Below are positions 36,250 through 60,668 of a stretch of 64,000 nucleotides of DNA, piece after piece. The DNA lies in the NCBI GenBank assembly GCA_973895155.1, contig OZ316897.1:1142515-1206514 (forward strand), written 5' to 3'. Origin of the DNA: Marsupella aquatica (lineage: Eukaryota; Plantae; Marchantiophyta). The notes beneath the pieces were generated by a model, which saw only the letters and a list, made by a program, of their open reading frames with translations, had not been told where the DNA came from and searched no databases. The first letter of the stretch is position 1. The number at the start of each line of letters is the position of its first letter. Made by a program: the position numbers and the translations under genes.

Positions 36250-37147
36250 TTTGGATTTGGACTAGGACCATCTGAGTCCGGATTTGGACCGGGACCATCC
36301 AAGTCTGGATTAGGACTGCAATCCGCCGAGTCTGGATTTGGACTATGATCCTCCGATTCTGGATTTGGCCAGGGACCATCCGAGTCCGGATTTGGACCGG
36401 GACCATCCAAGTTTGGATTTGGACTGCAATCCTCCGAGTCTAGATTTGGACTACAATCCTCCGATTCTGGATTTGGACTGGGACCATCCGAGTCCGGATT
36501 TAGACCGGGACCATCCAAGTTCGGATTTGGACTGCAATCCTTCGAGTCTGGATTTGGACTACGATCCTTCGATTCTAGATTTGGACTGGGACCATCCCAG
36601 TCCAAGGTTGGACTAGAACCATCCCAATCCAAACTAGGACTCGGACCATCCCAATCCAAACTAGGACTTGGACCATCCAAGTCCAAACTTGGACTCGGAC
36701 CATCCCAATCCAAACTTGGACTCGGACCATCCCAATCCAAACTAGGACTTAGACCATTAAAGTCCAAACTAGGACTCGGACCATCCAAATCCAAACTTGG
36801 ACTCGGACCATCCCAATCCAAACTAGGACTTAGACCATCCAAGCCCAAACTAGGACTCGGACCATCCCAATCCAAACTTGGACTCGGACCATCCAAGTTC
36901 AAACTTGGACTCGGATGATCCCAATCCAAAGTTGGACTCGGCCCATCGTAATCCAAAGTTGGACTTAGACCATCCCAATCCAAACTAGGACTTGGACCAT
37001 CCAAGTTCAAACTTGGACTCGTAGGATCCCAATCCAAACTAGGACTCAGATGATCCCAATGCAAAGTTGGACTCGGATGATCCTAATCCAAACTTGGACT
37101 AGGATCATCCGAATCCAAACTTGGACTAGAACCATCCTAGACCAACC
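36250..37147. repeat. ~33 copies of a 27-bp quasi-palindromic tandem repeat (TTGGACTCGGACCATCCCAATCCAAAC) in the predicted 5' intron of the transposase gene
   Basis: Directly visible; produces the spurious DWDGPSPSL 9-aa repeat ORF. Confidence 0.92.
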
Positions 37148-37344
37148 CATGATGTAATGGGAGATAAACTTCAAACATCTTAAGCTAAGAAAAATCCAAA
37201 TTTAGGAAGACCCCGTATTTTACGGATCTCCCTAGATATGGTGTAGCCTAAAGTTTGCATGGTCTTAAGGCAGACCCTAATGTCTACATACTGTTTCATG
37301 AAATAATGGAACCTTATATTTGAATGCATTAACCTTATACTCAC

Positions 37345-38228: not shown

Positions 38229-38390
38229 ATGGAAGCAAATCGCGTCCTTGTGATGTCCTACGTGGAAGAAACGGAGGAGTTTGACCTCTCCTCTATGAGC
38301 GACAGTGTGGAACTGGCACTCGAAGACTCTAGACAATTTCAATCACGAATCCCGAGTAAGTATCCATCACCTATCCTCCCTAAGTCTTAG

Positions 38391-38595
38391 AGGACTGGGA
38401 CCATCCGAGTCCAAAGTTGGACTCGGACCATCCCAATCCAAGCTTGGACTCGGACCATCCCAATCCAAAGTTGGACTCAGACCAACCCAATCCAAAGTTG
38501 GACTCGGATGATCCTAATCCATCTAGGAGATTGAATCCCGATTGTAGGAGCAAGTCTAAAACCATCTCAAGTTGGACTAGGACCATCCTAATCCA
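38391..38595. repeat. 5-6 copies of the same 27-bp palindromic repeat in cargo-gene intron 1
   Basis: GGACTCGGACCATCCCAATCCAAAGTT units between donor 38356 and acceptor 38657. Confidence 0.88.
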
Positions 38596-40385
38596 ACAAG
38601 AGTTATTCGAATGTTTTGAAGGTTTTAAGTCTAACATGGATGACGTTTATGATGCAGGGAGCGAACTTGTTGTTTTCAAACCCGCGATTGCACCGACCCA
38701 CTGCCTGGACGGATTCTTACTAGATGAGAGATCCCCACGCTTTCGATGGGGGCTTGAGTTCTCAAGAACCCCGCTTAATACTTCTGGGTCATCAACCACG
38801 ATTGAACCTGTTTTGACCTTAAAGTGCAGAGGAAATGATAGCCTGACTTTTGTTTGCGGACCTGTGGTCTCTGTTGGCATTGGAGGGAGAGGGATGAATA
38901 CGGTCATTCTCGAGATGCACGATAAGTCCTGTTGGGTTAAAGTTAACCTTTTGTCAAAGGCATACTCCTCTGAATTCAATGTCGAATGGCACGCAAGTGG
39001 GGAATTGAGCGTTTTGTCAATGGGATTTTTTCCAAAGACCTATGACACAAAGAAGTTGGTCGCCGGGGTAACTGGTATGCTTCCAGTCGACATTATGTAT
39101 GGGTTTCAATATTTGAAACTCAACATGATGAAGCACCAAGGCAATTTTTCTTTTGCAACTACCTGGACGTTAAGCAATTTAGTTGAGAAAGCTGGATTGT
39201 TATCGTTGGAGTTGGAGGAGCCTGGTGTTTTAATTGATAAGGATGTTGCATTTGCTCCCAAGTTTGATTTAGTCAAAGCAAAGCAATGGATAGAATCTTT
39301 GTCCAAGACGAGAAAGCTTCCAGCGGTGAATACAAACCCTGTGCGCGAGAAAGCGCCAGAGAAAGCTCCAGAACCTACAACAGAGACCACGGGAACTACA
39401 GCAGCGACCTTTCAAAGAGCAGTGGGAAAACAAAAACAAAGCCAAAGGAAACCTCCGGTTGAGAAGAAACTTCCGGTCGAGAAACCGAGTACGAGAAGCC
39501 GAGTTGAGAAGCCAGTTGAGAAGCCAGTTGAGAAGCCGAGTATGAGAAGCCGAGTTGAGAAGCCAGTTGAGAAGAAACGTCTGGTTGAGAAGCCGAGTGC
39601 AAGTGAAAAGAGACCAAGACAGAAGAAGAAACAAAAAATTGACAGTGCCATCAGGGATGACACTACAGAAAACCTGATAGTGCATTCACAAGATGTGGAC
39701 GAGCAGTTGGACGCTCCTGAGGAGAAGAAGGTCTTAGAAGGTAATGAGGTATTGCAACAAATGGAGCAATATTATACGTTTGGGATCAATTCAATATTTT
39801 TTATTCCTGTAGACAGTATTTTCCCTGCGTCGGCAAGACTCTGTTACAGAATGTTGAATGCAGAACATGTAAAGGAGGTGGCCAATTCCATGATAAGAAA
39901 TCCGGGGCATGAACCACACATAGCAGACTTGATTCCTTACACTACAAAACATAGAAACCTAATGCAGTATGACAACACAGAATCAGATAGGAGGGACTTT
40001 GTAGCAGCCGTGAAAAAGGGCGAGGTTCAATTCCTTGCCATTAGCGGTCAACATTCGGCTAGAGCAGCCAGATGGATTCGAGAATGGGCAAACAAGGATG
40101 CCAAGCTGACAACATTGGCAAAAAAGCTGGAATTTTGAAAGTCAAGAATATTATCTCATCGAACACCATCGTCAATATTAGTTGAGCATTCAATGCGATC
40201 TAATGCGATCAATAGCACGATGGTGTTTCAGTCATGCTTCAAAGATACAGTCGTTCATGCTAGGCGACAATTTGTGGAATGTGGAAAACCTAGCCGGCCA
40301 AAACATGGGGACAACAAAACAAACGCTCAAGACAATCAAAAATTTCAGGTACGAAGTGTTACTGCTTGATGGGTACAATACTATA

Positions 40386-41010
40386 GATTCATGCACATTC
40401 AGTAGAATATTTCCACTGATATCGCCTAGTTTTGCGTTGGACTGGGATGGTCCCAGTCCAAATGGATTCATGCACATTCAGTAGAATCTTTGTCCACTGA
40501 TATCGTCTAGTTTTGTGTTGGACTGGGATGGTCCCAGTCCAAATGGATTCATGCACATTCAGTAGAATATTTCCACTGATATCGCCTAGTTTTGCGTTGG
40601 ACTGGGATGGCCCCAATCCAAATGGATTCATACACATTCAATAGATTATTTTTCCACTGATACTGTCTAGTTTTGTTATGGACTGGGATGGTCCCAGTCC
40701 AAATGGATTCATGCACATTCAGTAGAATCTTTGTCCACTGATATCGTCTAGTTTTGTGTTGGACTGGGATGGATTCATGCACATTCAGTAGAATATTTCC
40801 ACTGATATCGCCTAGTTTTGCGTTGGACTGGGATGGCCCCAATCCAAATGGATTCATACACATTCAATAGATTATTTTTCCACTGATACTGTCTAGTTTT
40901 GTTATGGACTGGGATGGTCCCAGTCCAAACTAAATCGTGCACATTCAATAGAATATTTCCACTGAGACCGTCTAGTTCTGTGTTGGACTGGGATGGTCTC
41001 AGTCCGCACC
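40386..41010. repeat. Eight ~80-bp tandem units, each carrying the palindrome TTGGACTGGGA-TGG-TCCCAGTCCAA, in cargo-gene intron 2
   Basis: Directly visible between donor 40349 and acceptor 41069, with a higher-order three-unit duplication. Confidence 0.92.
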
Positions 41011-42634
41011 TGAGTGCTATCAAACAATTGAGTTATGGAGAACTAACAGACTTTCCTTTGCAATTGTAGGATTGGTTGGCTCTTGCAAGAATGACCATGG
41101 GAAGGAAAGATTGTCGAAATGTTTACTGGTTACTATTTGCGGACGATGCTCTTTTTGAGTTATGGAGTTTGGTATGCCAATTGTGGTTGGATGGGAAACT
41201 TCCCGATGGAGCTGGGGTAGAAGGAAATGAGAAGTCTGAAAAAGCAATTACTGTTGCCATGTTTCGTTGTTTTGATGGTGAGTTGATCTCACAACGAGAC
41301 ATCACAAGAATACTGACGCGGGTGAAGTCAGGAAAGGTATTGCTAAAGAAAGATGCCTCTAATAAATCAGACATGCCATCTATAGAGGAATTGGTCAAAG
41401 ATGTGAAGATCGTGCGGAAATTGAAGTCCCTTATTGAAGACTACTATTGCACCAAGGATGCGGTGAATTTCCCGGCAAATACTAATTGGGGGAAAGTAGT
41501 GGAGGTTCTACCTACGCTAGCAGTTGATTCAGAGTTCAGCAGGTGTCGAAGAGCCGCTGGTGAGGTCTATCTTGCCAACCTTTTAAAACCAAATCATACG
41601 CGGGAGAGCGCAATCTTGCCGACGACATTGGCATTCCGCCTAGATGATATATACTGCCAGAAATTTGGCGGAGGATCACGTTCTTGAACCCTACCATGGG
41701 CTACATTTTTTAGCGACAATCTCATGAAGACCATTGATCCAGAGTCATTGCAAGAAGCTCCTCTGACCTGCCCTCTTGCCATTGTTGATTTTAGCCGGCT
41801 TCCACAAAAACAATGGACTGAAGCAGAAATTCTTGTTCTCTTTGAATACATTGTGGAGCTTCCACAAAATCCCACGATTGTTGTGACAATAACAATTCAT
41901 CCTGGACAACTCGCATTGAATGTCCATGGTGCCCTTCGTAAACTGGGACAAGAGAAAGCTTTGACCATTCACATTGAGTATGGGAGTTATTCTCGAGATG
42001 ATCAACTGCACCCTCATGACTCATGTTGGGGTGGGGGGATTGAAGAAGTTCTCTTTGCGGGGATTTCTCGAGATGAAGACGTCAATTGGAATGAAGTTTT
42101 CAAGCCCAACTATCCAAAGCCAAAATTCTTGTATACTGCAAAGGATGTTGATTACGAAGTATGCAAGATCGACAAGGGAAAGGGGAAGGCGAAGGAATCA
42201 GATGAGGGGACACAAAACGATGACCTAAAAGTGGTTTTGGACCCGGAAGAGGCCGTCAAGATTATGAATATGGCCCCTCGATTTGAGACAGTTGGCAGTC
42301 GCGAAGGGTGGGTTAATCCTCATGCCAAACCCACGCGGATGATCCGAAGGATTATTGAATCCTTGTCAGAACTGGGAGATTTGGTTCTAGATTTTTTCTC
42401 CGGTGGCCAAGTCATGAAGACATCATTTTTTTGCGATAGGGAATGCTTTGTTTATTGTGACTCTCACTCCGAGAGGCATTTTGTGGAAGCTTTTGCTTTC
42501 TACCTTTGCGAGAGAGTTCCCTCACTTAAAGCCCATTGTGAATCACTTGCTGAAAATTCTCGACAATGGGCTACCACTGTTGCGGCTGTAGCTGTCGCTG
42601 TTGAATCCGATGGTTCTGAGTCTGAAGATGTTGC

Positions 42635-45600
42635 TGTGATGCCTAGATAGGAATCACTCGGCCGGTTAAGTGGGTAAAGCAGGAAGGCACCCTAGGAACA
42701 CCTTAGTATAGGGACAAAACAAGGAAAATATAAACAATTAGGGGCAACCATGGAACCCGGGCCGAGGCCGGAGGTAAGGCTGAGGGTGAAAACCCGATTA
42801 GGGTTAGGGCGCGTTAAGCGTCGGCGGCTAGGAAGGATCAACGGGAAGAAGGACCGGCAGAGGCGAGGGGTAAGGAGCGCTTGCAGGAGATGGTGGCTCA
42901 TTTGCGAGCACGAACTAGGCAGACGACTACGGGAGGCCAACTACTGTCAGCTGCTTAGGCAAGCACTCGGGGAGAGAGTAGATACCGACGATCGACCTAA
43001 GGAGGGTATGAGCAACGTCAATCAAGCGGCACATTTCTGGGGATGCCTGTTCGAACGGGCAACTGAGTACATCAAGACTTACGAGGACGAGGAGTCAGAA
43101 AGGGCAGCTCGAGAACGGCAGGAGCTCGCTCGATTGTGGGAGCTGCAGAAGACGGCTTTCTTAGGAGGCGAACTCATCAAGGACGAGTTCCTGTGGACGC
43201 CTACTTCCAATCAACTCGACGATCTTCTGTTTTGCAAAGACAGCGTCGTCGGCATCCGAGAGGCCATCAAGAACTGCAACGACATACACTGGGAATTAAA
43301 GGGTAGCACGGAAAGGTGGACCCAGGCAACGGTGCTAGGAGAAACCTCCACGGCAGCAGAGATGAAGAGGAAGGGAGCCGTCAACGATGAAGCCACCCCG
43401 GCAAAAAGAACGAGGTCGGCGGCACCAAAGAAGCCAGCCGAGCAGCAGAACAGGAGGCAGGGAGAAGCCGAAGAGGAGGAGGTCGATCCCATCAAGGCCA
43501 TTCCAACCAGGGATGACACCTGGAAGGGCTGGGCGGCAACCCTACCGGTGGAGGTGCAACTACATTTTGCACGGGAGGAGGATGCATGCTTTACGGCCAT
43601 GCAGACCAAGAAGTACCAAGGCTTCATGGCCGGATCCGGCTTGGAGGCCTTTGTAAGATTACCATGGCTGAAGCCGGAGGTACCGGAGTCAGACCTATTA
43701 GAATTCGTGGGGTCATGGGAACCAGAGACCAATTGCACGAGGATATATGGGAAGGATTTCTATCTTACTCCCAAGGTAATTGCCGAAGTGTTTGGCCTGC
43801 CGATAGGCAATAAGACCAAAGTTGATACCAAGAAGACCTTGCCTCACAAGGAGTTCCGGTCGTTCCCCGGGCCATCAACAAAGAATGGCTTCTTCCGGAA
43901 CACCTGCACCAACCCGCACATAGGAGAGATGATCGACTTCTTGCGGGTGACCATGCATTGTAACTTGCCGAGGGCAGAGATCGGCAAGGCACAGGTCTAT
44001 CTGGCAGAAAGGCCAGACCCAAGCCGGGACTACAACGGGTACCTCCTCAACCAATTGAAGAAGATCTTAAAGGAGGAGCAGCAGGTAATCGGCATGGGGA
44101 GCGTGTCGCGGCTGGGCTATCACATGCCGCTGTTGTGCTGGTATGCCAGAGGTCAGACTTTTGCCCCGGTACTTCCCCTACAGGTAAGGGCACCCGAGGA
44201 AGCTCCAACGCCGAGGCCGTTGGCTGAGAAGCCTCAACCACCTGTTAGTCCTACGATCGAGCAGGTGTTTAGGCCCAGGAAGGAGGACTTGCCGATGCAG
44301 CAACCAGGCATGCAGAGTCTGCTGAAACTACTGGAGAAAGAAAAGAAAAGAAATCGGCAACAACAACGGCAACGGCAACAATGCAGGACACTACTACAGA
44401 GGTAGGCCTACACCGGCTCACAAGAGAAAACCCCTTTGCTGGAGACAAGGAGAGAATCAGGCCGGAATCCAAGCCAGGTGTTCGAATGTACGTGGGAACC
44501 TCAAGCTCCGAATCTGAGGCAGAATTGCCTGAAGCTCCTACCGACGAAGAGGAGAGGGAGAAGCCGGACGTCCAAGAGGTAGAGGAGGCAGTGGAGGACT
44601 GCAGCCATGATAATTCCGGCTATGGGTCGGACCATCACGTTCCAGGAGTAAGGACCTGTGGCCGGTTTGTCCCCACACTTCCAAGGGTAGTGCGAGGGGA
44701 CCCCAACCAGCAGAGTAGCCCTGAGTCTCCCCCACCAGATGTTGCTCCCCCGAGCTTCGACGGCATAAAACAGACGGTGCAGGAATTTCAGGAGCGAATC
44801 AAGCAGGAGGAGGAGGCCGCCCTGGCTAAGGAAAAGGATTTACCAGGAGGAGATTGGCCGGAGGACATCAGGCGGCTAGCCGAAAAAGGAAGCAAACCTC
44901 TAGCCACGATTGAAGAGATCCGCAGGACGACTTGGGAGCAGAGGCCGCGATGGGCGATGCCGATCACTTCTACTTACTCCACCTACGCTAAGAATAGAGC
45001 CATGGAGTATGGTGAGATGTGTGGGGAACTTGCGCTCGGCATCTTTGGAGAGGAGTTGGAGGTAGGACCCTTTTTCCATAGGGAGCAGTTGGAGAAGCAC
45101 CAATTAGAAGAAGCGGTGGCTTTAGAGAGAAGCAAGAAGGACGAGGTCATTCGGCGGCTTAGGAGGATGGAAGCCGAGATTGAAGATCTAAGGGCGGCCA
45201 AGAAAGCCCAAGATGAACTGCGGATTAAACGACATGAGCTGAACATCATGCAGGGGCAGTTGGACACCGCGCAGGCTGATAATCAGAATATCAAGGATAA
45301 ACTGACTCAGACGCAGGAAGAGTTGGCCGACACGATCAAAGAGAGGGAGAAGTGGAAGCAAGAGCTGAAGAATACAGAGGAGGCCCACATAACAGCCAAC
45401 AGCCGGGCCATGGCGGAGACCCAAAGAAAGGAATGGGCGTTGAAAGGGGAGCTCGAGAAAATCCGCGGAGCCCTTGAGCAGAAGGAGGTCGAGTTAGGGA
45501 AATCCTATCAAGGGATTATGGCGCTACAGCAGGAGCTTGCGTCCCTGACGGCCAGCTTCAAGGCCGACTTAAGGGAGAAGGACGAGATGCTCGAACAGAC

Positions 45601-47293
45601 TTACGCCAAGATGAACCAGATGGAGTCTGTCATCATTGCAGAGCTCGACAAGGAGCTAAAAGCAACCCAGGAGGAGAGGGCTACCTTGAAGAAGGAATTG
45701 GAGGAAGCCCACAGGGAGCAGGAGGAGGCCAAAAATGAGCTGGAGGGGGCACGTAAGGACCTGGATGAAACCCAAGAGGAGTTGGAGGAAATCACGAGGA
45801 AGATGGAGAACCTACAGCGGCGGGCCGACAACCAAACAGAGCGGCTGAAGAAACAAGCCGCAGTATTTAAATGCTTAGCTGCAGCAGGTCCATCTCCCGT
45901 TGGGACAAACCAGTTACCAGGGGTGGTAATTGCCGAAGGACAAGCCGCGCCACCTACACCAGTGCCGGAAGTAAGTGGGAAGGGGAAGGGACCAGCTGCC
46001 GAGCCACCAACGAAGAAGAAGCGGAAACCTTCAGGGTCAAGGAGTAATACGACTTCACAGGCCGTGGTGATCAAGGAGGTAGACCCAGCACCGACCCCAG
46101 ACAGGGTCACGGCTAAGGATCCAACTACCCTAGGGGAAGGGGAGGCCGAAGCCGAGGGAGTGGCTGAAGCCAAAGCCGTGGGAGTGGCTGAGGCCAAAGC
46201 CGTGGGTATTGCCGAGGCCGGTGTCGAGGCTGAAGCCGAAGGTGGACCCAGTCAGGCCGAGGGAGAGTTGACTCGGTCAAGGGCAGGTAATCTGTCAGTA
46301 GGCGGGCCAACGGCAGTGGCTGAGGAGGAAGTGTTGGGGGCATCCATTAAGGATCCACCACCGGTGTCGTGACGGTGCAAGGGCGCCGTTCCTTTTAGGG
46401 AGGGCGGATGTGGAGGGAGGAGGCGTGAGTGGGCAGGGCGGGCGCGGATCTCCACGTTTAGGATTAGGATCAGAACCAGGAGCAGCCCTGACACTTAGCT
46501 TAGTGGGATTGCGGTTCCACTGGTAGGAGCAACACTTGTGCTCCTGCCTTGCTGTACATAGGTAGATTCGGGCAAGTAGATTACTGTCAGGTAGATTAGG
46601 CTTACGATGCAAAGAATGGCGGATCCACTACCAGGATAAGTACCTGGGCAGCGGGGAGCTCAGGGCCTCTTCTTTAGCAAGTTTTTAGTTTGCACCAGCC
46701 GGGCTGGGATCAAGTAGTACGAGAAGCTCTCGGTTAGTCATACAGTGACCCTTGTGTATATTCATGTTTCCTCATGCCTAAGAGCTGAATAGAGTTGGCC
46801 TCACGGCTTAGTTCACAGAACTTGTGTATGAGATGTACTGTTTGTATGGCAAGTGCATGGTATGACTCAGTCAGAATGAGTCATTTTGCTATTTGTGTGT
46901 CGCATTAACTTGTGTGAAGAGTGCCCACATCAACAGAAGGAAGGAAAGTAAGCAGGGGAGTGAGAGTTGGATGTGTCGAGCTGAGAGAGGTCTTAGCGGC
47001 TTAACCAAGCCTATTGGGGATCATTCCGGCGGCGGAATCCAAACATACCTAACAAGACGGAGGGGAAGACAGGGGAAGACAGGGGAAGGCCTATATTAGG
47101 CCGTCTACGTATCTCATGACCCGATGAAGGATCTGTCCAGTATATGTGTGTAAAATGTTAATAGTAGTAGTAGAAGGTTAGCAGCGTCCCATGCCGCTAA
47201 GCCGCGGAAACGGCCTCGCCAAGCACGAAACCTGCGGGAATCGGCTTGAGCTGGGGGGTTTCTTGGGTTTAGGGAGCCATGGAACGCACCACA
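42635..47293 (+). repeat. 5' LTR (4659 bp)
   Basis: TGTGATGC...GCACCACA; direct repeat of 53515-58173 at a constant offset of 10880, with about 13 substitutions seen by eye. Confidence 0.95.
42750..46372 (+). CDS. LTR-encoded accessory gene, 5' copy: ORF-A (551 aa, plant-transposon/PMD-like domain) and ORF-B (663 aa, long coiled coil); probably one 1177-aa protein via intron 44184-44272
   Basis: Intact long ORFs. GLEAFVRLPW..LLEFV..IYGKDFYLTPKVIAEVFGLP resembles plant retrotransposon accessory-ORF domains. A CAG/GTAAGG donor and a TTTAG/G acceptor join the frames in phase 0. Confidence 0.8.
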
Positions 47294-47297
47294 TTTT

Positions 47298-47315
47298 TGG
47301 CGCTAGATGGAGGGG
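47298..47315 (+). promoter_or_regulatory. Primer-binding site, tRNA-Asn type
   Basis: TGGCGCTAGATGGAGGGG, 4 nt after the LTR. From memory it is one mismatch from the complement of the plant tRNA-Asn(GUU) 3' end. Confidence 0.8.
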
Positions 47316-47362
47316 GCATTTCTTAAGCCGTGAGATATGAAGTTAGAACGGAAGCGTAGGTA

Positions 47363-50353
47363 ATGACTGACCTTACGCCGAGGGAAGAAAGAGTGATTCA
47401 ACGGGAGAGAGCTCGACTGCAGCAGCTCGCCAGGTGGCATGATACACAGCGACTGAGAGGGGCAGAAAGAGCTGGTAGCTCCGAAACTGGAAGTGGCATC
47501 GAAGAAGACATACCAGAAGAAGAGTCGGTAAGGAGAAGTGAGTCTCCAACCGACATGGGGGAACCAGAGGCACGGCCAGACGAGAGGCCAGGGACCAGAT
47601 TGAGCCAGCGGTCGCGCATACATTACAAGGCATTTCATGGGAGAGGAGATGAGGATCCGGACGAATGGTTGGATGATTTCGAGGGAACCGCTGCAGCAAA
47701 TGGAGAATCGGCCATCAAGATGCAGATTCTTCCCGGCCTGTTCAAGGGTGAGGCTAGGCCTTGGTACAGAGCATTAGATGTGGAAGATCAAGCCATCTGG
47801 GATATCTTCAAAACACTCTTTGTTAAGGAGTTTCGACCCATTGGAACTTCAGAACTAGCAGTGCTGAAGTTGGGACAACTTCGGTTCAAGGAGAACAAAT
47901 CCTTCAGGAAGTTCTTGCAACGCTTTCAGAAACTGGTAAGACGTACAAAGACCAATGCATCTGAAGGTATGCAACTTCAATGGTTGGTGAATGCTTTGCC
48001 ACAGAAGATGAGTTTTGCAATTAGGAAAGAGAACCCGGAGACTTTAGCCGAAGCAATTAAGGATATTCAATTATACATTAATGCAGATATCACAAGCCGG
48101 AAGAAACAGCTTAAGTCTGAGAGTTCCTCATCAGAGGAGGGATCACCCCATAAGAAAAAAGATAAGAAGAAGAAACATTCCAAGAAGTCTAGAAGTGATA
48201 AGTCAAGCTCGGATAGTGGGAGTAGTAAGAGTGAGTCATCTTCTAGTTCTGAAGAAGAAAAAACTAGGAAAAGGAAGGGCAGAAGGAGAGGGAAGACGAA
48301 AGTCAAGATGGAGGCTAAGCCACCAGATAACATCGTAGCCCTTACCGAGCAACTTAAGGCTATCATTGCAGAGGTAAAACCAAAGAAGAAGGTAGTACAG
48401 GAGGATAGGTCTGTATGGTGTGCCTTATGTTATAAAACCGGACACCATAAAGATGCGTGTCCTAAGCTTAATACTAATCATGTTTGGCATGTGGCCGAGA
48501 TCAGACCATGTCAGGGAGAAGTAGAGTACTTTTTAGGAGATGCCGCTGATAGTGTTTTCGGCATCAGTGAGATTGGAGCACGAGACCTATCCAACAGACC
48601 TGCATCTCTGTGGTCAGGGTTAAGGAACAATCCAGGAGAGATGTATCCTCGGATTATTCAGAACCCGTTAGTACCTCCTAGGCCGAATGTGCAAAGATTT
48701 GCGGCGTGCTATAATTGTGGTCAACCTGGCCATTTTGCTAGAGAATGCCCAAATGCACGCAAACAGGGTGATGGACAACCAGCTCAGCTATGTATGGGAT
48801 GCCGACAGGAAGGTCATATGCTAGGGCAATGTCCTACTTGGTTGGCAAGCCTGGCCGCAAATCATAAGCTTTTGCCGATCAAGATCTTACCGCCAGGTAC
48901 TACCCCCGGAGGAGTTCAAATCAACCACATCGAACTAGGATGGCAAGAGGATGCCGAGGCAGAGTTCGTACCATCTGATGATGAGGCCGAAGCCCTATCA
49001 ACCTTCTCAGAGGAGGATTTAGATCATGATTGCTACCGGGTCTCTACTCGATCTACCAGAAGGAAGGAAAGGTGGGATGGGCTGGCCAAAAATAAAGGGA
49101 AGGTTACGGAGGAAAGGATCGACTCTTCGTCAACATCAACAGAAGGAGAAGGGAGGGCTCCGGCAATACAGGTAAGCCATGAGCCCACCAGTGAAACCAA
49201 TCCTTCACAAGATAGCGACTTCAATCGAGATCATCCTAAGTTGTTCTACCCCTCTGTTACGGCTAGTGTTAAGGAACAACTAAGAGAATTAGAAACCCTG
49301 GAGAATACCGAAGCCATTGCCAAAGATGTAAAACGAGCAAAAGCATTGTTTGCTTCGGAAGACCCAACAGCTGTGGAGACTAGCGTGGCAAAACTGGCCG
49401 AATCCAAGGAAACACCACCAGAGGAGAAGCCGATTGTTCCCTATGACCTGGCTAAAGATGTACTAGAATCTAGAGTCTCGGCAACAGTAGGTCAACTATT
49501 GAAAAATAGCCCGTACTTCCGGAAGCAATTAAGGAAGGCTATTCTCGGCAAGCCGAGATTACCCAAGGTAGCAACCAGATCCGACGTACTAATGATAGAA
49601 GAAGATCAAGGAGCCCCAGCATTACCATTAATGATTCAAGGAGAATTATTACTACGGGTACCCATCGATGGAGGATCAGGGGTATGTATTATGATTGATT
49701 CAACAGCAAAAGGGTGGGGTCTAACACCGGAGATGACTGGAAGAGTGTTGAACATGGCCAATGGATATCAGGTCATTCCTACGGGAGTGTTAACCGGCAT
49801 CAAGACAGAGATAGGAGGTATCTTCTTTAGCATTAACTATGTAGTAATGAAGCCGGTAAACCCTACGTCATTCCGGCTATTGATTGGTAGGCCATGGCTG
49901 TACCTAGCCGAGGTAATAGAAGATTGGGGTAAAAAGCAGTTCACTTTCGGGACCCCCTCTATCACAGTATCCTGGGACACTAAGGATGACCGTAGGAAAA
50001 GCATAAGGGAAGTAGATGGGTACGACAGTGGACTGGAGTCAGCCGATGAAGTACGTTGGTTAGAATGCCTCACTAACCTAACCGAAGAAGGTGTCTTTGG
50101 ACCAGAGGTACCCCCCAGCGGATTATGGCAAGAACCAATGGAAGGTGACTTGGAAGAAGAAGACAAAGAGGTCGAGGACTGCTTTACAATAGAATCCACC
50201 TTTTTAGCTGCAATTCCGGAGGAAGTAAAGGATGTAGACCAATTGGATGAAACGGCTAAGTGGGGAGCAGTAGCAGGGACAGTGGATTTTCTGCAGGCGT
50301 TGTGGCAGAGCCGGCAGGGTTCACAACGCCATCGATCATCGGCAAGGAATTAA
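47363..50353 (+). CDS. gag: Gag-protease polyprotein (996 aa)
   Basis: FHGRGDEDPDEWL..GEARPWY capsid, three CX2CX4HX4C knuckles, and aspartic protease IDGGSG..LLIGRPWL. Confidence 0.92.
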   Translation: MTDLTPREERVIQRERARLQQLARWHDTQRLRGAERAGSSETGSGIEEDIPEEESVRRSESPTDMGEPEARPDERPGTRLSQRSRIHYKAFHGRGDEDPDEWLDDFEGTAAANGESAIKMQILPGLFKGEARPWYRALDVEDQAIWDIFKTLFVKEFRPIGTSELAVLKLGQLRFKENKSFRKFLQRFQKLVRRTKTNASEGMQLQWLVNALPQKMSFAIRKENPETLAEAIKDIQLYINADITSRKKQLKSESSSSEEGSPHKKKDKKKKHSKKSRSDKSSSDSGSSKSESSSSSEEEKTRKRKGRRRGKTKVKMEAKPPDNIVALTEQLKAIIAEVKPKKKVVQEDRSVWCALCYKTGHHKDACPKLNTNHVWHVAEIRPCQGEVEYFLGDAADSVFGISEIGARDLSNRPASLWSGLRNNPGEMYPRIIQNPLVPPRPNVQRFAACYNCGQPGHFARECPNARKQGDGQPAQLCMGCRQEGHMLGQCPTWLASLAANHKLLPIKILPPGTTPGGVQINHIELGWQEDAEAEFVPSDDEAEALSTFSEEDLDHDCYRVSTRSTRRKERWDGLAKNKGKVTEERIDSSSTSTEGEGRAPAIQVSHEPTSETNPSQDSDFNRDHPKLFYPSVTASVKEQLRELETLENTEAIAKDVKRAKALFASEDPTAVETSVAKLAESKETPPEEKPIVPYDLAKDVLESRVSATVGQLLKNSPYFRKQLRKAILGKPRLPKVATRSDVLMIEEDQGAPALPLMIQGELLLRVPIDGGSGVCIMIDSTAKGWGLTPEMTGRVLNMANGYQVIPTGVLTGIKTEIGGIFFSINYVVMKPVNPTSFRLLIGRPWLYLAEVIEDWGKKQFTFGTPSITVSWDTKDDRRKSIREVDGYDSGLESADEVRWLECLTNLTEEGVFGPEVPPSGLWQEPMEGDLEEEDKEVEDCFTIESTFLAAIPEEVKDVDQLDETAKWGAVAGTVDFLQALWQSRQGSQRHRSSARN

Positions 50354-50547
50354 ATATCAAGGGATCGGCATACAAGCCGATTACGAGGGCAGAACAAATT
50401 GAGGCCCTATTAGAAGCCGAGAGAGCACAGCGGCCTAACTCTCAGGAGCAAGAGGTGGATGAGATGGACAGACACGATCCAGAGCCAAGGTAGGAAGGGG
50501 AGCCGACCACTAATTCAAAACCGAATAGACCGGTAAGGGGACAATCT

Positions 50548-53526
50548 ATGGACACCAAGGAAGGGACCGACTCGGCTAGTCCAGCCGAGATCCCAGTTTA
50601 TGGAGGTATGAGATTAGAGAGACTGGAAGCCGAACTGGACCCAAATTTGAAGAAGCAGATTAATATGATCCAAGCACGGCAATATCGGAAGCTCGACTTA
50701 GGAGAGGGAAGAGAACTGAACTTAGGGAGAAACCTAGCACCTGAGCTCGAGAAAGAGATCAGTGACTTATTGATTGAATTTCAGGATGTGTTTGCATGGA
50801 GTCACCAAGATCTAAAGGGAGTAGATCCAACACTAGGGGAACATCGAATTGATCTCATGTTAGGAGCCAAATCATTTCGACAACCAATTCGAAGGATGAA
50901 CCCGAAGTATTCCCTGCTGGTCAAAACAGAAATCGACAAACTAGTGGAAGCTGGATTCATCACTCCAGTCCTGCATTCAGACTGGGTGTCTCCAATTGTG
51001 ATAGTTCCCAAGAAAGCTGGACCCGATGGTAAACCCAAGATCCGGGTTTGTCAGGATTACAGGAAGCTGAATGAAGCAACATTAAAAGACCATTTTCCTT
51101 TACCGTTTACTGATATGGTACTAGACATGGTAGCCAGTCATGAACTATATTCATTCATGGATGGATACTCTGGTTATAACCAAATCAGGATTCGGCAGGA
51201 AGACCAAATCAAGACGGCCTTCATCACGGAATGGGGGATCTATGTCTTCAATCGTATGTCGTTTGGACTCTGCAACGCACCAGCTATGTTCCAACGATTA
51301 ATGGTGAACATTTTTCATGATTACTTGAGAAAGTTCATGGAAATCTTCATTGATGACTTTGCAGTATTCGGGAAGGCATCGAAACATGCTAAATACCTCA
51401 GGAAAACCTTCATGAGATGTAGAGAGGTGGGTCTCAAGTTACACCCAGATAAATGTTTTTTTGCAGTAACCGAGGGGGTGCTACTAGGTCACAAGGTATC
51501 AAGGAAGGGCATTGAGATTGACAAAGGTAAGCTAGCAGTATGGCTAGATATCATGCAACCTAAGAACATAAAGGATGTAAGATCCTTCTTGGGATGCATT
51601 GGTTACTATCGCCGGTTCATCAAGGATTTTGCCAAGCTGGCTTTACCATTAACCAATATGCTCAAGGCAGGAGCAGACTTCGAACCCACACCCGAACGAG
51701 TCACAGCGGTGGTAGAATTGAAGCAGATGTTAGTAGAGGCCCCAGTCATGATAGCACCGGACTGGAACAAAGATTTTCATGTTTTTGTAGATGTCTCGGG
51801 CTTCTGTATTGGCTCAGTACTAAGTCAGTTGGATGAGAAAGGAAGGGACCATCCCATATACTTCGCAAGCCGTCAGCTTGCCGATGCCGAACAGAACTAC
51901 TCTACCACGGAAAGAGAAGCATTAGGAGTCATTTATTCTTGTAAAAAGTTTAGGCATTATTTACTAGGGTACAAGGTAATCTTTCATACTGATCATGAAA
52001 GTTTGAAGTACCTAGTCAATAAGCCGGACCTTACAGGCAGAGTAGCAAGATGGATTTTGCTATTACAGGAGTTTGACTATGAGCTGAGGATCAAGCCGGG
52101 AAAGTTACATGCCAATGCCGACTTCTTTTCAAGGATCACAGGTAAACCTGCCACGGATTGCATCGATGATCGATTCCCCGACGAGGAGCTATTCGTTGTG
52201 GAAATAGCTGGTACATGGTACCCTGAGATTTTACAATTTCTCAGCACTTCCAGATTACAGTCAGGATTAAGCCGAGAGCAAGCCGCAGTCTTTGTGCGGA
52301 AGGTCAGACAGTATCAGTGCATTAAAGGCATACTGCACAAGCATGGAATCAACGGCACGATTCAAAGATGTTTGGAAAAGAGAGAGGTAAAACGAGTCCT
52401 ACGGGCCATGCATGGAGAGGAGGCCGGAGGACATTTTGCCCCAGTAACCACGTCTAAGAAGATATTAAATGCCGGTTACTGGTGGCCCACCTTGCACAAA
52501 GATGTCTATCAGTTTATCAAACAATGCGATCCTTGTCAACGAGCGGGAGGACCAAGGGCGTCCACCAGGCATCCACTGCACCCTATTCTACCTCTGGCAC
52601 CATTCGAGAAGTGGGGTATTGATTACATTGGACCTCTGAAACCACTGACCCACCCTAGACGGAACAAGTACATAATCCTGGCTACGGATTATGCAACTAA
52701 ATGGGTAGAGGCCAGACCAACAACGAAGGATGATGCAATTACTACGGCTAGATTCATGTATGAGCAAATCTTCACCAGGTATGGAGCACCCCTAGAATTA
52801 GTTAGTGATAGAGGAACCCATTTTTTGAATGATATAATTAGTCGTTTAAATGAGCAGTATTTAGTTAAACATAGGCCTACTACTCCCTACCATCCAAAGG
52901 CAAACGGGTTGACAGAACGAGCAAACGGAATTATAGGAAAGATATTGAACAAGACAGTAGCTCAGAACAAACTCGATTGGGATGATAAATTGTTTGCTGC
53001 TGTTTTTGCTTACAATCTTGCCTATAAATCCACTACCGGTCATACACCCTTCTTCTTAACCTTTGGACAAGAAGCCCTGGTACCCATGCAACTTGAGATA
53101 CCGACATTTCAAGTTACAATTGAGGAAAGAGCCTCAGCGGAGGAGAGCCTAAAGGAGCGAGAATATAGGTTAGAAGCTTTAGAGGAAGCGAGAATGATTT
53201 CAGCCGAGAGAGTAGAATATAGACAGAATATCATGAAGCAGCAGTATGATAAAAGGTTAAAAGTAGTTAGTATTCATACCGGTGATCTTGTGCTACTTTA
53301 TGACAGTAGGTATAGTAGGTTTCCAGGAAAGCTTTACACTCGCTGGTTAGGACCCTTTAGAGTAACCATGATGTTCCCCAATGGCTCCGTACAATTGGCC
53401 AACATTACGGGAGAGGTATATCCAGTTCGCATCCATTATGACCGCCTCAAGAAATACTATATGGACGAAGATGAAGTTGTTCGCGAGGACGCTTCACAAT
53501 TAAGTGGGGAGCTATGTGATGCCTAG
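50548..53526 (+). CDS. pol: Pol: RT-RNase H-integrase (992 aa)
   Basis: WVSPIVIVPKK, DYRKLN, DGYSGYNQI, FIDDF; RNase H VDVSG..ERE..TDH; integrase HHCC, GIDY/SDRG/TER, WLGPF. The stop lies within the first 12 nt of the 3' LTR. Confidence 0.96.
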   Translation: MDTKEGTDSASPAEIPVYGGMRLERLEAELDPNLKKQINMIQARQYRKLDLGEGRELNLGRNLAPELEKEISDLLIEFQDVFAWSHQDLKGVDPTLGEHRIDLMLGAKSFRQPIRRMNPKYSLLVKTEIDKLVEAGFITPVLHSDWVSPIVIVPKKAGPDGKPKIRVCQDYRKLNEATLKDHFPLPFTDMVLDMVASHELYSFMDGYSGYNQIRIRQEDQIKTAFITEWGIYVFNRMSFGLCNAPAMFQRLMVNIFHDYLRKFMEIFIDDFAVFGKASKHAKYLRKTFMRCREVGLKLHPDKCFFAVTEGVLLGHKVSRKGIEIDKGKLAVWLDIMQPKNIKDVRSFLGCIGYYRRFIKDFAKLALPLTNMLKAGADFEPTPERVTAVVELKQMLVEAPVMIAPDWNKDFHVFVDVSGFCIGSVLSQLDEKGRDHPIYFASRQLADAEQNYSTTEREALGVIYSCKKFRHYLLGYKVIFHTDHESLKYLVNKPDLTGRVARWILLLQEFDYELRIKPGKLHANADFFSRITGKPATDCIDDRFPDEELFVVEIAGTWYPEILQFLSTSRLQSGLSREQAAVFVRKVRQYQCIKGILHKHGINGTIQRCLEKREVKRVLRAMHGEEAGGHFAPVTTSKKILNAGYWWPTLHKDVYQFIKQCDPCQRAGGPRASTRHPLHPILPLAPFEKWGIDYIGPLKPLTHPRRNKYIILATDYATKWVEARPTTKDDAITTARFMYEQIFTRYGAPLELVSDRGTHFLNDIISRLNEQYLVKHRPTTPYHPKANGLTERANGIIGKILNKTVAQNKLDWDDKLFAAVFAYNLAYKSTTGHTPFFLTFGQEALVPMQLEIPTFQVTIEERASAEESLKEREYRLEALEEARMISAERVEYRQNIMKQQYDKRLKVVSIHTGDLVLLYDSRYSRFPGKLYTRWLGPFRVTMMFPNGSVQLANITGEVYPVRIHYDRLKKYYMDEDEVVREDASQLSGELCDA
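53502..53511 (+). promoter_or_regulatory. Polypurine tract
   Basis: AAGTGGGGAG, 3 nt before the 3' LTR TG. Confidence 0.8.
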
Positions 53527-56500
53527 ACAGGAATCACTCGGCCGGTTAAGTGGGTAAAGCAGGAAGGCACCCTAGGAACACCTTAGTATAGGGACAAAAC
53601 AAGGAAAATATAAACAATTAGGGGCAACCATGGAACCCGGGCCGAGGCCGGAGGTAAGGCTGAGGGTGAAAACCCGATTAGGGTTAGGGCGCGTTAAGCG
53701 TCGGCGGCTAGGAAGGATCAACGGGAAGAAGGACCGGCAGAGGCGAGGGGTAAGGAGCGCTTGCAGGAGATGGTGGCTCATTTGCGAGCACGAACTAGGC
53801 AGACGACTACGGGAGGCCAACTACTGTCAGCTGCTTAGGCAAGCACTCGGGGAGAGAGTAGATACCGACGATCGACCTAAGGAGGGTATGAGCAACGTCA
53901 ATCAAGCGGCACATTTCTGGGGATGCCTGTTCGAACGGGCAACTGAGTACATCAAGACTTACGAGGACGAGGAGTCAGAAAGGGCAGCTCGAGAACGGCA
54001 GGAGCTCGCTCGATTGTGGGAGCTGCAGAAGACGGCTTTCTTAGGAGGCGAACTCATCAAGGACGAGTTCCTGTGGACGCCTACTTCCAATCAACTCGAC
54101 GATCTTCTGTTTTGCAAAGACAGCGTCGTCGGCATCCGAGAGGCCATCAAGAACTGCAACGACATACACTGGGAATTAAAGGGTAGCACGGAAAGGTGGA
54201 CCCAGGCAACGGTGCTAGGAGAAACCTCCACGGCAGCAGAGATGAAGAGGAAGGGAGCCGTCAACGATGAAGCCACCCCGGCAAAAAGAACGAGGTCGGC
54301 GGCACCAAAGAAGCCAGCCGAGCAGCAGAACAGGAGGCAGGGAGAAGCCGAAGAGGAGGAGGTCGATCCCATCAAGGCCATTCCAACCAGGGATGACACC
54401 TGGAAGGGCTGGGCGGCAACCCTACCGGTGGAGGTGCAACTACATTTTGCACGGGAGGAGGATGCATGCTTTACGGCCATGCAGACCAAGAAGTACCAAG
54501 GCTTCATGGCCGGATCCGGCTTGGAGGCCTTTGTAAGATTACCATGGCTGAAGCCGGAGGTACCGGAGTCAGACCTATTAGAATTCGTGGGGTCATGGGA
54601 ACCCGAGACCAATTGCACGAGGATATATGGGAAGGATTTCTATCTTACTCCCAAGGTAATTGCCGAAGTGTTTGGCCTGCCGATAGGCAATAAGACCAAA
54701 GTTGATACCAAGAAGACCTTGCCTCACAAGGAGTTCCGGTCGTTCCCCGGGCCATCAACAAAGAATGGCTTCTTCCGGAACACCTGCACCAACCCGCACA
54801 TAGGAGAGATGATCGACTTCTTGCGGGTGACCATGCATTGTAACTTGCCGAGGGCAGAGATCGGCAAGGCACAGGTCTATCTGGCAGAAAGGCCAGACCC
54901 AAGCCGGGACTACAACGGGTACCTCCTCAACCAATTGAAGAAGATCTTAAAGGAGGAGCAGCAGGTAATCGGCATGGGGAGCGTGTCGCGGCTGGGCTAT
55001 CACATGCCGCTGTTGTGCTGGTATGCCAGAGGTCAGACTTTTGCCCCGGTACTTCCCCTACAGGTAAGGGCACCCGAGGAAGCTCCAACGCCGAGGCCGT
55101 TGGCTGAGAAGCCTCAACCACCTGTTAGTCCTACGATCGAGCAGGTGTTTAGGCCCAGGAAGGAGGACTTGCCGATGCAGCAACCAGGCATGCAGAGTCT
55201 GCTGAAACTACTGGAGAAAGAAAAGAAAAGAAATCGGCAACAACAACGGCAACGGCAACAATGCAGGACACTACTACAGAGGTAGGCCTACACCGGCTCA
55301 CAAGAGAAAACCCCTTTGCTGGAGACAAGGAGAGAATCAGGCCGGAATCCAAGCCAGGTGTTCGAATGTACGTGGGAACCTCAAGCTCCGAATCTGAGGC
55401 AGAATTGCCTGAAGCTCCTACCGACGAAGAGGAGAGGGAGAAGCCGGACGTCCAAGAGGTAGAGGAGGCAGTGGAGGACTGCAGCCATGATAATTCCGGC
55501 TATGGGTCGGACCATCACGTTCCAGGAGTAAGGACCTGTGGCCGGTTTGTCCCCACACTTCCAAGGGTAGTGCGAGGGGACCCCAACCAGCAGAGTAGCC
55601 CTGAGTCTCCCCCACCAGATGTTGCTCCCCCGAGCTTCGACGGCATAAAACAGACGGTGCAGGAATTTCAGGAGCGAATCAAGCAGGAGGAGGAGGCCGC
55701 CCTGGCTAAGGAAAAGGATTTACCAGGAGGAGATTGGCCGGAGGACATCAGGCGGCTAGCCGAAAAAGGAAGCAAACCTCTAGCCACGATTGAAGAGATC
55801 CGCAGGACGACTTGGGAGCAGAGGCCGCGATGGGCGATGCCGATCACTTCTACTTACTCCACCTACGCTAAGAATAGAGCCATGGAGTATGGTGAGATGT
55901 GTGGGGAACTTGCGCTCGGCATCTTTGGAGAGGAGTTGGAGGTAGGACCCTTTTTCCATAGGGAGCAGTTGGAGAAGCACCAATTAGAAGAAGCGGTGGC
56001 TTTAGAGAGAAGCAAGAAGGACGAGGTCATTCGGCGGCTTAGGAGGATGGAAGCCGAGATTGAAGATCTAAGGGCGGCCAAGAAAGCCCAAGATGAACTG
56101 CGGATTAAACGACATGAGCTGAACATCATGCAGGGGCAGTTGGACACCGCGCAGGCTGATAATCAGAATATCAAGGATAAACTGACTCAGACGCAGGAAG
56201 AGTTGGCCGACACGATCAAAGAGAGGGAGAAGTGGAAGCAAGAGCTGAAGAATACAGAGGAGGCCCACATAACAGCCAACAGCCGGGCCATGGCGGAGAC
56301 CCAAAGAAAGGAATGGGCGTTGAAAGGGGAGCTCGAGAAAATCCGCGGAGCCCTTGAGCAGAAGGAGGTCGAGTTAGGGAAATCCTATCAAGGGATTATG
56401 GCGCTACAGCAGGAGCTTGCGTCCCTGACGGCCAGCTTCAAGGCCGACTTAAGGGAGAAGGACGAGATGCTCGAACAGACTTACGCCAAGATGAACCAGA

Positions 56501-58173
56501 TGGAGTCTGTCATCATTGCAGAGCTCGACAAGGAGCTAAAAGCAACCCAGGAGGAGAGGGCTACCTTGAAGAAGGAATTGGAGGAAGCCCACAGGGAGCA
56601 GGAGGAGGCCAAAAATGAGCTGGAGGGGGCACGTAAGGACCTGGATGAAACCCAAGAGGAGTTGGAGGAAATCACGAGGAAGATGGAGAACCTACAGCGG
56701 CGGGCCGACAACCAAACAGAGCGGCTGAAGAAACAAGCCGCAGTATTTAAATGCTTAGCTGCAGCAGGTCCATCTCCCGTTGGGACAAACCAGTTACCAG
56801 GGGTGGTAATTGCCGAAGGACAAGCCGCGCCACCTGCACCAGTGCCGGAAGTAAGTGGGAAGGGGAAGGGACCAGCTGCCGAGCCACCAACGAAGAAGAA
56901 GCGGAAACCTTCAGGGTCAAGGAGTAATACGACTTCACAGGCCGTGGTGATCAAGGAGGTAGACCCAGCACCGACCCCAGACAGGGTCACGGCTAAGGAT
57001 CCAACTACCCTAGGGGAAGGGGAGGCCGAAGCCGAGGGAGTGGCTGAAGCCGAAGCCGTGGGAGTGGCTGAGGCCGAAGCCGTGGGTATTGCCGAGGCCG
57101 GTGTCGAGGCTGAAGCCGAAGGTGGACCCAGTCAGGCCGAGGGAGAGTTGACTCGGTCAAGGGCAGGTAATCTGTCAGTAGGCGGGCCAACGGCAGTGGC
57201 TGAGGAGGAAGTGTTGGGGGCGTCCATTAAGGATCCACCACCGGTGTCGTGACGGTGCAAGGGCGCCGTTCCTTTTAGGGAGGGCGGACGTGGAGGGAGG
57301 AGGCGTGAGTGGGCAGGGCGGGCGCGGATCTCCACGTTTAGGATTAGGATCAGAACCAGGAGCAGCCCTGACACTTAGCTTAGTGGGATTGCGGTTCCAC
57401 TGGTAGGAGCAACACTTGTGCTCCTGCCTTGCTGTACATAGGTAGATTCGGGCAAGTAGATTACTGTCAGGTAGATTAGGCTTACGATGCAAAGAATGGC
57501 GGATCCACTACCAGGATAAGTACCTGGGCAGCGGGGAGCTCAGGGCCTCTTCTTTAGCAAGTTTTTAGTTTGCACCAGCCGGGCTGGGATCAAGTAGTAC
57601 GAGAAGCTCTCGGTTAGTCATACAGTGACCCTTGTGTATATTCATGTTTCCTCATGCCTAAGAGCTGAATAGAGTTGGCCTCACGGCTTAGTTCGCAGAA
57701 CTTGTGTATGAGATGTACTGTTTGTATGGCAAGTGCATGGTATGACTCAGTCAGAATGAGTCATTTTGCTATTTGTGTGTCGCATTAACTTGTGTGAAGA
57801 GAGCCCACATCAACAGAAGGAAGGAAAGTAAGCAGGGGAGTGAGAGTTGGATGTGTCGAGCTGAGAGAGGTCTTAGCGGCTTAACCAAGCCTATTGGGGA
57901 TCATTCCGGCGGCGGAATCCAAATATACCTAACAAGACGGAGGGGAAGACAGGGGAAGACAGGGGAAGGCCTATATTAGGCCGGCTACGTATCTCATGAC
58001 CCGATGAAGGATCTGTCCAGTATATGTGTGTAAAATGTTAATAGTAGTAGTAGAAGGTTAGCAGCGTCCCATGCCGCTAAGCCGTGGAAACGGCCTCGCC
58101 AAGCACGAAACCTGCGGGAATCGGCTTGAGCTGGGGGGTTTCTTGGGTTTAGGGAGCCATGGGACGCACCACA
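53515..58173 (+). repeat. 3' LTR (4659 bp)
   Basis: Follows the PPT; ends CA followed by the TSD GTTGC. Confidence 0.95.
53630..57252 (+). CDS. LTR-encoded accessory gene, 3' copy (predicted intron 55064-55152)
   Basis: ORF-A translation is identical to the 5' copy; ORF-B differs at 3 residues. Confidence 0.8.
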
Positions 58174-59215
58174 GTTGCTGACAAAGTGGCTGAAGGCATA
58201 GAGGCATCAGAGGAGGCATATGTCAAGAATTTGGATGACCGTGTTGGTCAAGGTGAGCCTTACGATGTAGATGATGATATTGGACTTGCACCTAACCGTT
58301 CATCTGGTTTAGATGACATCCCTCCGGGGCCCAATGAAGTTCAAGTTGATGATAACTTGGACAAGGATGATCCCAATCCATCAACGCCAGGAGGACAGAT
58401 GGAGCAACTGGAAGGAGCAAGGGTTGATACGTTTGATCATCTTTCTTCAACCAATCTGATCAATGAAGGCGCAACGAGGCTTGGAGATTCAAATGAAGCT
58501 GAAACTAAAGAATTGACTCGGGGGGAGACTGAGGGGGAGACTGGCGGATTGCCTATCATTCCAATCAATCCAGGAGGAAATGCATCAACGGCTGCTGACA
58601 ACCAGGCAGGTGCTTCAACTTGTCCTGACACACTCTTTTCAGCTTCTGATGACAAATTGGTGTTCGTTTATTCACACTCGGGGAGTCCTATTGTCCTTCC
58701 GCTCTCAAAAAAGAAAGGAAATAGAGTTGGATCAACTGGATGGAGGTCATTGGAATGCGACGCACGATGTTACGTGTGGAAAAGTGGGCCAAATCAAGGC
58801 CAAGAAATATCATTGGATGCTGCTCCTTCAATTCTCAATAAGGAGGAGTATAAAAGTGGAGAATTGGGGTTGATAACTCCTGTTTGGACTTCACCTTATT
58901 GGGTAGAACAAAGTACTTCAGATGTCAATTTTGAAATCCAACAGGAGCTTGGTGCTGACATGATTATTGATGAATACGGATCTCTTATTTCGGAATGAAA
59001 TTCAGCCTTTGACTTTGTATTTATTCATATCAATCTAAAACACTTCTGGGTCTCACAGAATGCGCTCACCAATTAAAGTCTCCATATCCGTCTACACATT
59101 GTGAGGCTTCTAAAAACGGTATGTAGGTTAATTTTCTTTTTTGTCAGCCATTGTCTTGTATTTTTGGACTGAGACAATCCTAATCCAAAGTTCACTTTTG
59201 GTCTTTTCTCTGAGA

Positions 59216-60614: not shown

Positions 60615-60668
60615 AGGACTGATTTGTGAACAAAAGAAAATACACTTTTAATGAATAGGCTGATAAAC

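Follow-up and report, generated by a model that had tools for sequence, protein, structure and literature searches.

We analyzed a 64,000-nucleotide window of the Marsupella aquatica genome (Marchantiophyta; assembly GCA_973895155.1, contig OZ316897.1, forward-strand positions 1,142,515 to 1,206,514) and focused on the segment at window positions 38229-58998. The segment lies inside a DNA transposon, between a transposase gene and a gene related to NIF/FCP1-type phosphatases, and comprises the exons of a single gene into which a long terminal repeat (LTR) retrotransposon has inserted (Table 1). The segment is probably a decayed accessory gene of a class II transposon family with elements of ~13 kb, and the intact gene would encode a non-catalytic accessory protein derived from a methyltransferase (MTase). 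An initial annotation had described the locus as a spliced fusion of a ParB/Srx-like domain and a beta-class amino-MTase that serves the transposon.

A spliced gene inside a DNA transposon

The element shows the features of a class II transposon: perfect 26-bp terminal inverted repeats (TIRs) with subterminal repeats (AAAGTGTACATTT) alongside them, a 4-bp target-site duplication (TSD) and an empty site that can be reconstructed. Removing the element together with one copy of AAAC made a 552-amino-acid copia gag open reading frame (ORF) continuous again, and removing 3 or 5 bp in place of the 4-bp TSD broke the gag frame. Because excision with one AAAC restores the frame, we conclude that the DNA transposon inserted into a copia element. 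This Ty1/copia element, with gag, zinc knuckle and integrase, lies at 31158-31792 and 60669-63076, divided by the transposon. A second copy of the family was found in Calypogeia fissa (locus L003, positions 2514-16254; 13.7 kb), whose TIR is related and whose 4-bp TSD is AGAG. A TSD of this length would suit Chapaev-like elements rather than CACTA elements.

The accessory gene was studied with searches run by exon and by stop-separated piece. In its intact form, the gene comprises three or more exons and would encode ~1,400 residues. Along the protein, an N-terminal domain and a Lys-rich linker would be followed by a ParB/Srx-like (DGQHR-like) region lacking the phosphate-binding Arg, then by a helical middle region and a domain of beta-class N6/N4 DNA amino-MTase descent, and finally by an acidic linker and a conserved C-terminal domain. 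The N-terminal domain in exon 2 is conserved but without a recognized fold, and the C-terminal domain is conserved in L003 and in a further locus, L001; neither of these regions matched Pfam or the Protein Data Bank (PDB). The peptides singled out by the initial annotation are indeed present: the ORF at 38417-40138 (plus strand) terminates with ...IPVDSIFPASARLCYRMLNAEHVKEVANSM...FLAISGQHSARAA, the stretch containing IPVDSIFP, and continues past its TGA in the same frame into KSRILS...SMRSN, while the ORF at 41724-42650 contains NPHAKPTRMIRRIIESLSELGDLVLDFFSGG...DRECFVYCD. Homologues carry Arg at the positions of both in-frame TGA codons, with single members having His or Gln, and we therefore consider both stops to be CGA>TGA-type nonsense mutations; reading them as Arg, as had been proposed, agrees with the homologues.

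The two introns, two stops and 15.5-kb insertion of the proposed gene model were all recovered, with canonical GT-AG splice sites that keep the frame. The intron separating the ParB-like from the MTase-like exon interrupts the same codon, again with GT-AG ends, in the window and at L003, L010 and L012. An annotated C. fissa model (P0010), found by the exon 2 search, crosses from the ParB-like region to the start of exon 3, and three Riccia sorocarpa proteins (P0077, P0093 and P0117) combine the ParB-like region and a weak match to PF01555 in a single polypeptide. The order of ParB-like exon, MTase-like exon and NIF gene is common to the window, L001, L003, L010 and L012. The alternative, a spliced model that is an artifact joining pieces of different genes, could appeal to exon 1, for which homologues gave no comparative support, and to the splitting of the exons by gene callers on metagenomic contigs. 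Against the gene order shared by five loci, the retained intron position and frame, and the annotated proteins spanning parts of the model, we regard it as very improbable, and the claim of a single spliced gene holds.

The insertion in exon 3 is a 15.5-kb Ty3-type element with gag, reverse transcriptase, RNase H and integrase. Its 4659-bp LTRs differ by ~11 mismatches, and the frame of the accessory gene is continuous across the insertion site within the acidic linker (...SESEDVA|DKVAEG...). Each 4.66-kb LTR contains two long ORFs of 551 and 663 amino acids, which is unusual for LTRs; neither ORF matched Pfam. The window copy is dead: two CGA>TGA-type stops interrupt it, an LTR retrotransposon has recently inserted into it, and the transposase gene is broken. 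The earlier idea that the gene serves the transposon is correct in placing it within a genuine DNA transposon with TIRs and a TSD; the window copy is a pseudogene and for that reason serves nothing now.

Table 1. Features of the locus, in window coordinates unless another locus is named.
Feature	Position	Strand	Description
Whole DNA transposon	31793-60664	.	28,872 bp; ~13.3 kb minus the nested LTR element
TSD	31789-31792 and 60665-60668		AAAC, 4 bp; flanks the DNA transposon
Left TIR	31793-31818	+	ATCAGCCTATTCATTAAAAGTGTATT; followed by subterminal AAAGTGTACATTTGG repeats to ~32160
Right TIR	60639-60664	-	Perfect 26-bp complement of the left TIR; subterminal repeats from ~60520
Transposase gene	32408-36186	-	Four ORF pieces, at least one in-frame stop; core matches DUF7869
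Repeat array	36171-37180	.	~35 copies of a 27-bp unit; palindrome TTGGACTSGGA-NNN-TCCCARTCCAA; between the transposase and accessory genes
Palindrome sites	36473-37118, 38390-38596, 40437-41007, 59164-59188
Exon 1, putative	38229-38355	+	ATG to GTAAGT donor; intron ends CAG; frame agrees with exon 2
Exon 2	38658-40348	+	Conserved N-terminal domain, Lys-rich linker, ParB-like region; then GTACG...TAG
ParB/Srx-like (DGQHR-like) region	39740-40348	+	Weak signals: DndB, ParB phrog, hhalign
In-frame TGA no. 1	40136-40138	+	Homologues have Arg (or His)
Intron 2	40349-41069	+	GT...AG; enlarged by 81-bp tandem units bearing the element palindrome
Exon 3, first part	41070-42634	+	Helical middle region and MTase-derived domain
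In-frame TGA no. 2	41685-41687	+	Homologues have Arg or Gln
Candidate motif IV site	41775-41798	+	LAIVDFSR; conserved hydrophobic strand ending in Asp, no PP(Y/F) after it
Motifs X, I and II of beta-class N6/N4 amino-MTases	42279-42460	+	VNPHAKP...GDLVLDFFSGG...RECFVYCD
Ty3-type LTR retrotransposon	42635-58173	+	LTRs 42635-47293 and 53515-58173; TSD GTTGC 42630-42634 and 58174-58178
Exon 3, remainder	58179-58998	+	Acidic linker, conserved C-terminal domain, stop codon
NIF/FCP1-like (UBLCP1-like) gene	59216-60274	+	Conserved partner downstream of the accessory gene
NIF-like gene, other copies	L001 4374-5480; L012 5188-6396

Domains of the accessory protein

The MTase-like part of exon 3 matched the Pfam family N6_N4_Mtase (PF01555) at 27.4 bits (E = 3.8e-6) in the window and at 27.9 bits in L003, above the gathering cut-off of 26.7; the match was limited to profile positions 145-215 of 221, and other members scored below the cut-off or gave no match. 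In tblastn searches against phage genomes, 21 of the 22 weak matches fell under annotated DNA methylases. Using hhalign, the family aligned with five phage MTases (probability 95%, E = 2.6e-8 to 6.1e-8) and with 121 haloarchaeal and haloviral fusions of ParB_N and MTase domains (probability 87%, E = 3.7e-6). With both of these independent reference sets, the aligned stretch always covered motifs X and I plus strand 2, with VNxxAKP...VLDFFSGG...RECFVY of the family facing HPTxKP...VLDPFxGSGTT...RxxIGxE. Motifs X, I and II are thus present and conserved across liverwort classes, with motif I shortened to DFFSGG. An hhalign alignment forced into the N-terminal half of the domain was unreliable and was rejected.

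The catalytic motif IV, (D/N/S)PP(Y/F/W), was found in none of the 14 aligned members from at least three species. At its candidate position, the members read LAIVDFSR, LVILDTTS, LCVLDLTK or LVIADLIA, that is, D-[FTL]-[STI]-[RSKA]. An AlphaFold model of the MTase-like exon, built from a nine-row alignment, had a mean predicted local distance difference test (pLDDT) score of 44, and only a strand-helix-strand-helix-strand-strand stretch reached 65-81; Foldseek searches with the low-pLDDT models of this and the ParB-like exon returned no significant matches, the hits being Alba-like beta-alpha units or noise. Judged by its motifs, the C-terminal half of the domain descends from beta-class N6_N4 amino-MTases and may still bind S-adenosylmethionine (AdoMet), without methylation by the canonical mechanism. 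Since motif IV is missing throughout the family, an active methylase is unlikely and "MTase" can mean MTase-derived at most; of the beta-class MTase proposed for the locus, motifs X-I-II stand, with PF01555 scores above the cut-off and the hhalign matches, and the catalytic motif does not.

In the ParB/Srx-like region, the family consensus, YPFG..F.IPV...P...YR..N..HV...M.....P..ADL.P ... F.AISGQHS..AAK ... R..RIL, includes the box [SDN]GQH[ST]xxAA. Its His is kept almost without exception, and every member has Ser or Thr where the GxxR box has Arg; the member from the lycophyte Diphasiastrum complanatum reads VDGQHT. Weak matches were obtained with the Pfam family DndB, a ParB relative of the DGQHR type (E = 0.011; 3 of 86 members), and with the PHROGs "ParB-like partition protein" (E = 0.031; 2 of 86 members). 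Against the ParB_N halves of the 121 fusions, hhalign aligned FLAISGQHSARAAK to GLIADGEHRWRAAK (P = 0.013), and the score of 20.2 exceeded those of all 30 column shuffles (maximum 17.2). Profile searches of the PDB gave Lys-rich low-complexity matches alone, single-sequence PDB searches were empty, and tblastn of the domain against phages and plasmids gave nothing relevant. The AlphaFold model of the ParB-like exon, from a nine-row alignment, had a mean pLDDT of 44.7. The ParB/Srx assignment of the initial annotation is therefore not confirmed, as the letters of the pattern are present and significance in the profile searches is absent; we put the chance that the region has the ParB/Srx fold at about one half.

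Partner genes and palindrome arrays

The core of the transposase gene in the window is putatively of the DDE type and matched the Pfam family DUF7869 (E = 4.9e-44). The transposase ORFs of the C. fissa copy are found at the same place and on the same strand and showed a weak TNP1/En/Spm match. The window gene has an in-frame stop at 34262-34264 (minus strand), at a position left open in the C. fissa homologue (..YYSHRVLAKK..), which adds to the case for decay of the whole window copy.

The NIF-like partner gene matched the Pfam profile NIF (E = 5.7e-15) and, over the HAD core, the PDB structure of UBLCP1 (3shq; E = 4.5e-13). It shares this core with the UBLCP1/SCP1 C-terminal-domain phosphatases (NIF, PF03031) and differs from them in being coded within a transposon and in its catalytic motif: in place of DxDxT, the window gene reads D-L-N-K-I, and all three copies covering the site (window, L001 and L012) read D-L-N-K-[IVL], aligned to DIDYT of UBLCP1. 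The DxDx(T/V) signature of the FCP1/SCP HAD phosphatases is thus absent from a gene that the NIF profile recognizes, and because the motif is replaced in each covering copy, the partner is probably a pseudo-phosphatase. As far as their sequences tell, three enzyme-like modules of the element are without canonical catalytic residues.

The window palindrome, TTGGACTGGGA-NNN-TCCCAGTCCAA, occurs at 27 sites with at most three mismatches, against 0 expected. All 27 are within the transposon and in its non-coding parts: upstream of the accessory gene, in both of its introns and right before the start codon of the NIF-like gene. The C. fissa copy has ~21 sites of another palindrome, GCCTCGAGAC-CG-GTCTCGAGGC, in comparable places (L003 7058-15863). 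The arrays may be protein-binding sites.

An inverted pair at 25353/60561 was considered for the ends of the element and dropped: the left end is at 31793, and 25353 is part of an older related fragment. This fragment, at 25353-27178, has a TIR-like end with the subterminal repeats of the 31793-60664 element, and it contains a degenerate piece of a DUF7869 transposase (25711-26058, minus strand) and an Ulp1 (Peptidase_C48) ORF (26729-27175).

Alternative readings, origin and possible role

Several results weigh against our reading of the gene as encoding a non-catalytic, MTase-derived accessory protein that would bind DNA or chromatin. The divergent intact copies L010 and L012 gave no PF01555 match whatsoever, and the N-terminal, catalytic half of the MTase-like domain gave no significant profile alignment. 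The placement of LAIVDFSR at motif IV follows from the order and the predicted strand-helix pattern of a low-confidence model, and a non-canonical catalytic site is conceivable. For the ParB-like region, searches of Pfam, NCBIfam, PADLOC, PHROGs and the PDB with 86 members and the family profile gave no significant match, and the reversed-reference controls of the hhalign comparison scored 17.7 and 18.8 (P = 0.035-0.059), near the 20.2 of the family. Large plant DNA transposons often contain internal tandem repeats that are not necessarily bound by protein, so that the arrays are treated here as candidate sites only.

The protein could instead be an active N6-adenine or N4-cytosine DNA MTase that marks the DNA of the element or the host. 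The PF01555 scores of two members above the curated cut-off, the retention of motifs X, I and II across liverwort classes and the use by liverworts of a beta-class N4-cytosine enzyme, MpDN4MT1, would agree with this; that enzyme has TSPPY, and no family member has (D/N/S)PP(Y/F/W), the position reading D-[FTL]-[STI]-[RSKA], while motif I is cut to DFFSGG and the catalytic half is beyond profile recognition, which makes an active enzyme improbable. A stronger competitor is that the region is not ParB/Srx but a DNA-binding or structural module of unknown type joined to an MTase remnant, in which case the likeness to prokaryotic ParB-MTases would be coincidental. The lack of a significant database match, the closeness of the reversed controls and the missing GxxR-box Arg in all members argue for it; the coherent annotations of the weak matches (DndB in three members, the ParB-like phrog in two), the pairing of FLAISGQHSARAAK with GLIADGEHRWRAAK above every column shuffle, the VDGQHT of the lycophyte member, and the motif order and N-terminal placement shared with the ParB_N-MTase fusions argue against it. 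We consider this alternative quite possible, if somewhat short of probable.

Among 1.84 billion representatives searched by profile, 132 family members (cluster representatives) were identified. The named members are from R. sorocarpa, C. fissa and the lycophyte D. complanatum (P0097); hosts of the family include liverworts and at least one lycophyte. P0109 and many other members come from metagenome or SRA contigs. Neither half had a close prokaryotic relative among the 1.84 billion representatives or in the phage and plasmid sets. The gene may have originated when a ready-made ParB-MTase was acquired horizontally, and host liverwort PF01555 genes may be an alternative source or sink. In the latter case, the MTase-like part would have been taken from, or would be the source of, a DN4MT1-type host gene, in place of an origin from a prokaryotic or phage ParB-MTase. 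Host beta-class MTases exist in liverworts, large DNA transposons often capture genes, and the searches returned no close prokaryotic relative, all of which suit such an exchange; the domain order equal to that of the prokaryotic ParB_N-MTase fusions and the presence of a lycophyte member speak against it, and we think it unlikely, with a small but real chance of being correct.

The closest prokaryotic and viral counterparts are fusions of ParB_N and N6_N4_Mtase such as M.PhiCh1-I of the Natrialba phage PhiCh1, which also have a ParB-type N-terminal and a beta-class MTase C-terminal part and whose motifs X-I-II align with the window family at E = 3.7e-6. They are ~400 amino acids long, lack introns and keep a DPPY-type motif IV intact, whereas the window protein has ~1,400 amino acids, four extra regions, no motif IV and no GxxR Arg; the similarity between the ParB halves is not significant. 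Among published systems, the PAG cassette of red algae is the nearest parallel. The giant EnSpm/Plavaka transposons of red algae carry the genes PAG2, with PF01555 and SET, and PAG3, with a ParB-like domain and a 2OG oxygenase, and have tandem inverted repeats beside PAG3 (bioRxiv 10.1101/2025.02.11.637652). Compared by domain content and repeat layout, both systems have accessory genes of large transposons of DDE type, putatively so for the window element, with PF01555 and a weakly ParB-like domain adjoining inverted repeats; unlike the PAGs, the window gene fuses both domains in one polypeptide, lacks SET and 2OG and has a NIF-like partner, and its family occurs in land plants, with a 4-bp TSD and DUF7869.

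A beta-class amino-MTase ancestry in a eukaryote is shared with MpDN4MT1a/b of Marchantia, likewise a liverwort, and with N4CMT of bdelloid rotifers. These are active host genes that keep TSPPY, and MpDN4MT1 has no extra domains, in contrast to the transposon-borne, multi-domain window family without the catalytic motif. Catalytically dead MTase domains are retained as binding modules in the DIRS1 retrotransposon and in METTL14 (Iyer et al., PMC4738411). In both, the MTase fold is kept with substituted catalytic residues, in DIRS1 inside a mobile element; they belong to other MTase clades (PCIF1-like and MT-A70) and another element class, and the analogy is functional only.

As we favor a non-catalytic accessory protein, we can outline how it might act. 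The accessory gene travels with the DUF7869-core transposase gene and the UBLCP1/SCP-like NIF gene with its DLN motif, and its product would be a DNA- or chromatin-binding factor acting on the element's own DNA without methyl transfer. The element-specific palindrome arrays around and within the gene could be its binding sites, and the protein might assist the assembly of the transposition complex or oppose host silencing. A more ambitious model, which we consider rather unlikely, is a co-evolving land-plant transposon module in which a ParB-like/MTase-derived pseudo-enzyme, together with a NIF-like pseudo-phosphatase and with lineage-specific palindrome arrays used as parS-like loading sites, would allow the element to recognize its own DNA and to escape or redirect host silencing or transcription. 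Such a module would parallel the red-algal Plavaka PAG cassette as an independent system with fused domains, and it might be related by descent to the liverwort N4-cytosine MTase DN4MT1.

Transposons are known to carry DNA-modification genes in fungi (TET/JBP in KDZ elements) and in red algae (the Plavaka PAGs), and such genes are also known from retrotransposons. The literature searched contained no description of the present family, nor any report of an accessory gene derived from PF01555 in a DNA transposon of a land plant. The findings call for caution in annotation, as loci of this type may be named DNA methylases, like one Riccia protein in UniRef, though an active enzyme is unlikely. 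They also bear on the source of the liverwort amino-MTases. The family is widespread in liverworts and has kept its three-gene order across deep divergences; because it retains the AdoMet-binding motifs without the catalytic ones, it provides a tractable example of pseudo-enzyme retention by a selfish element.

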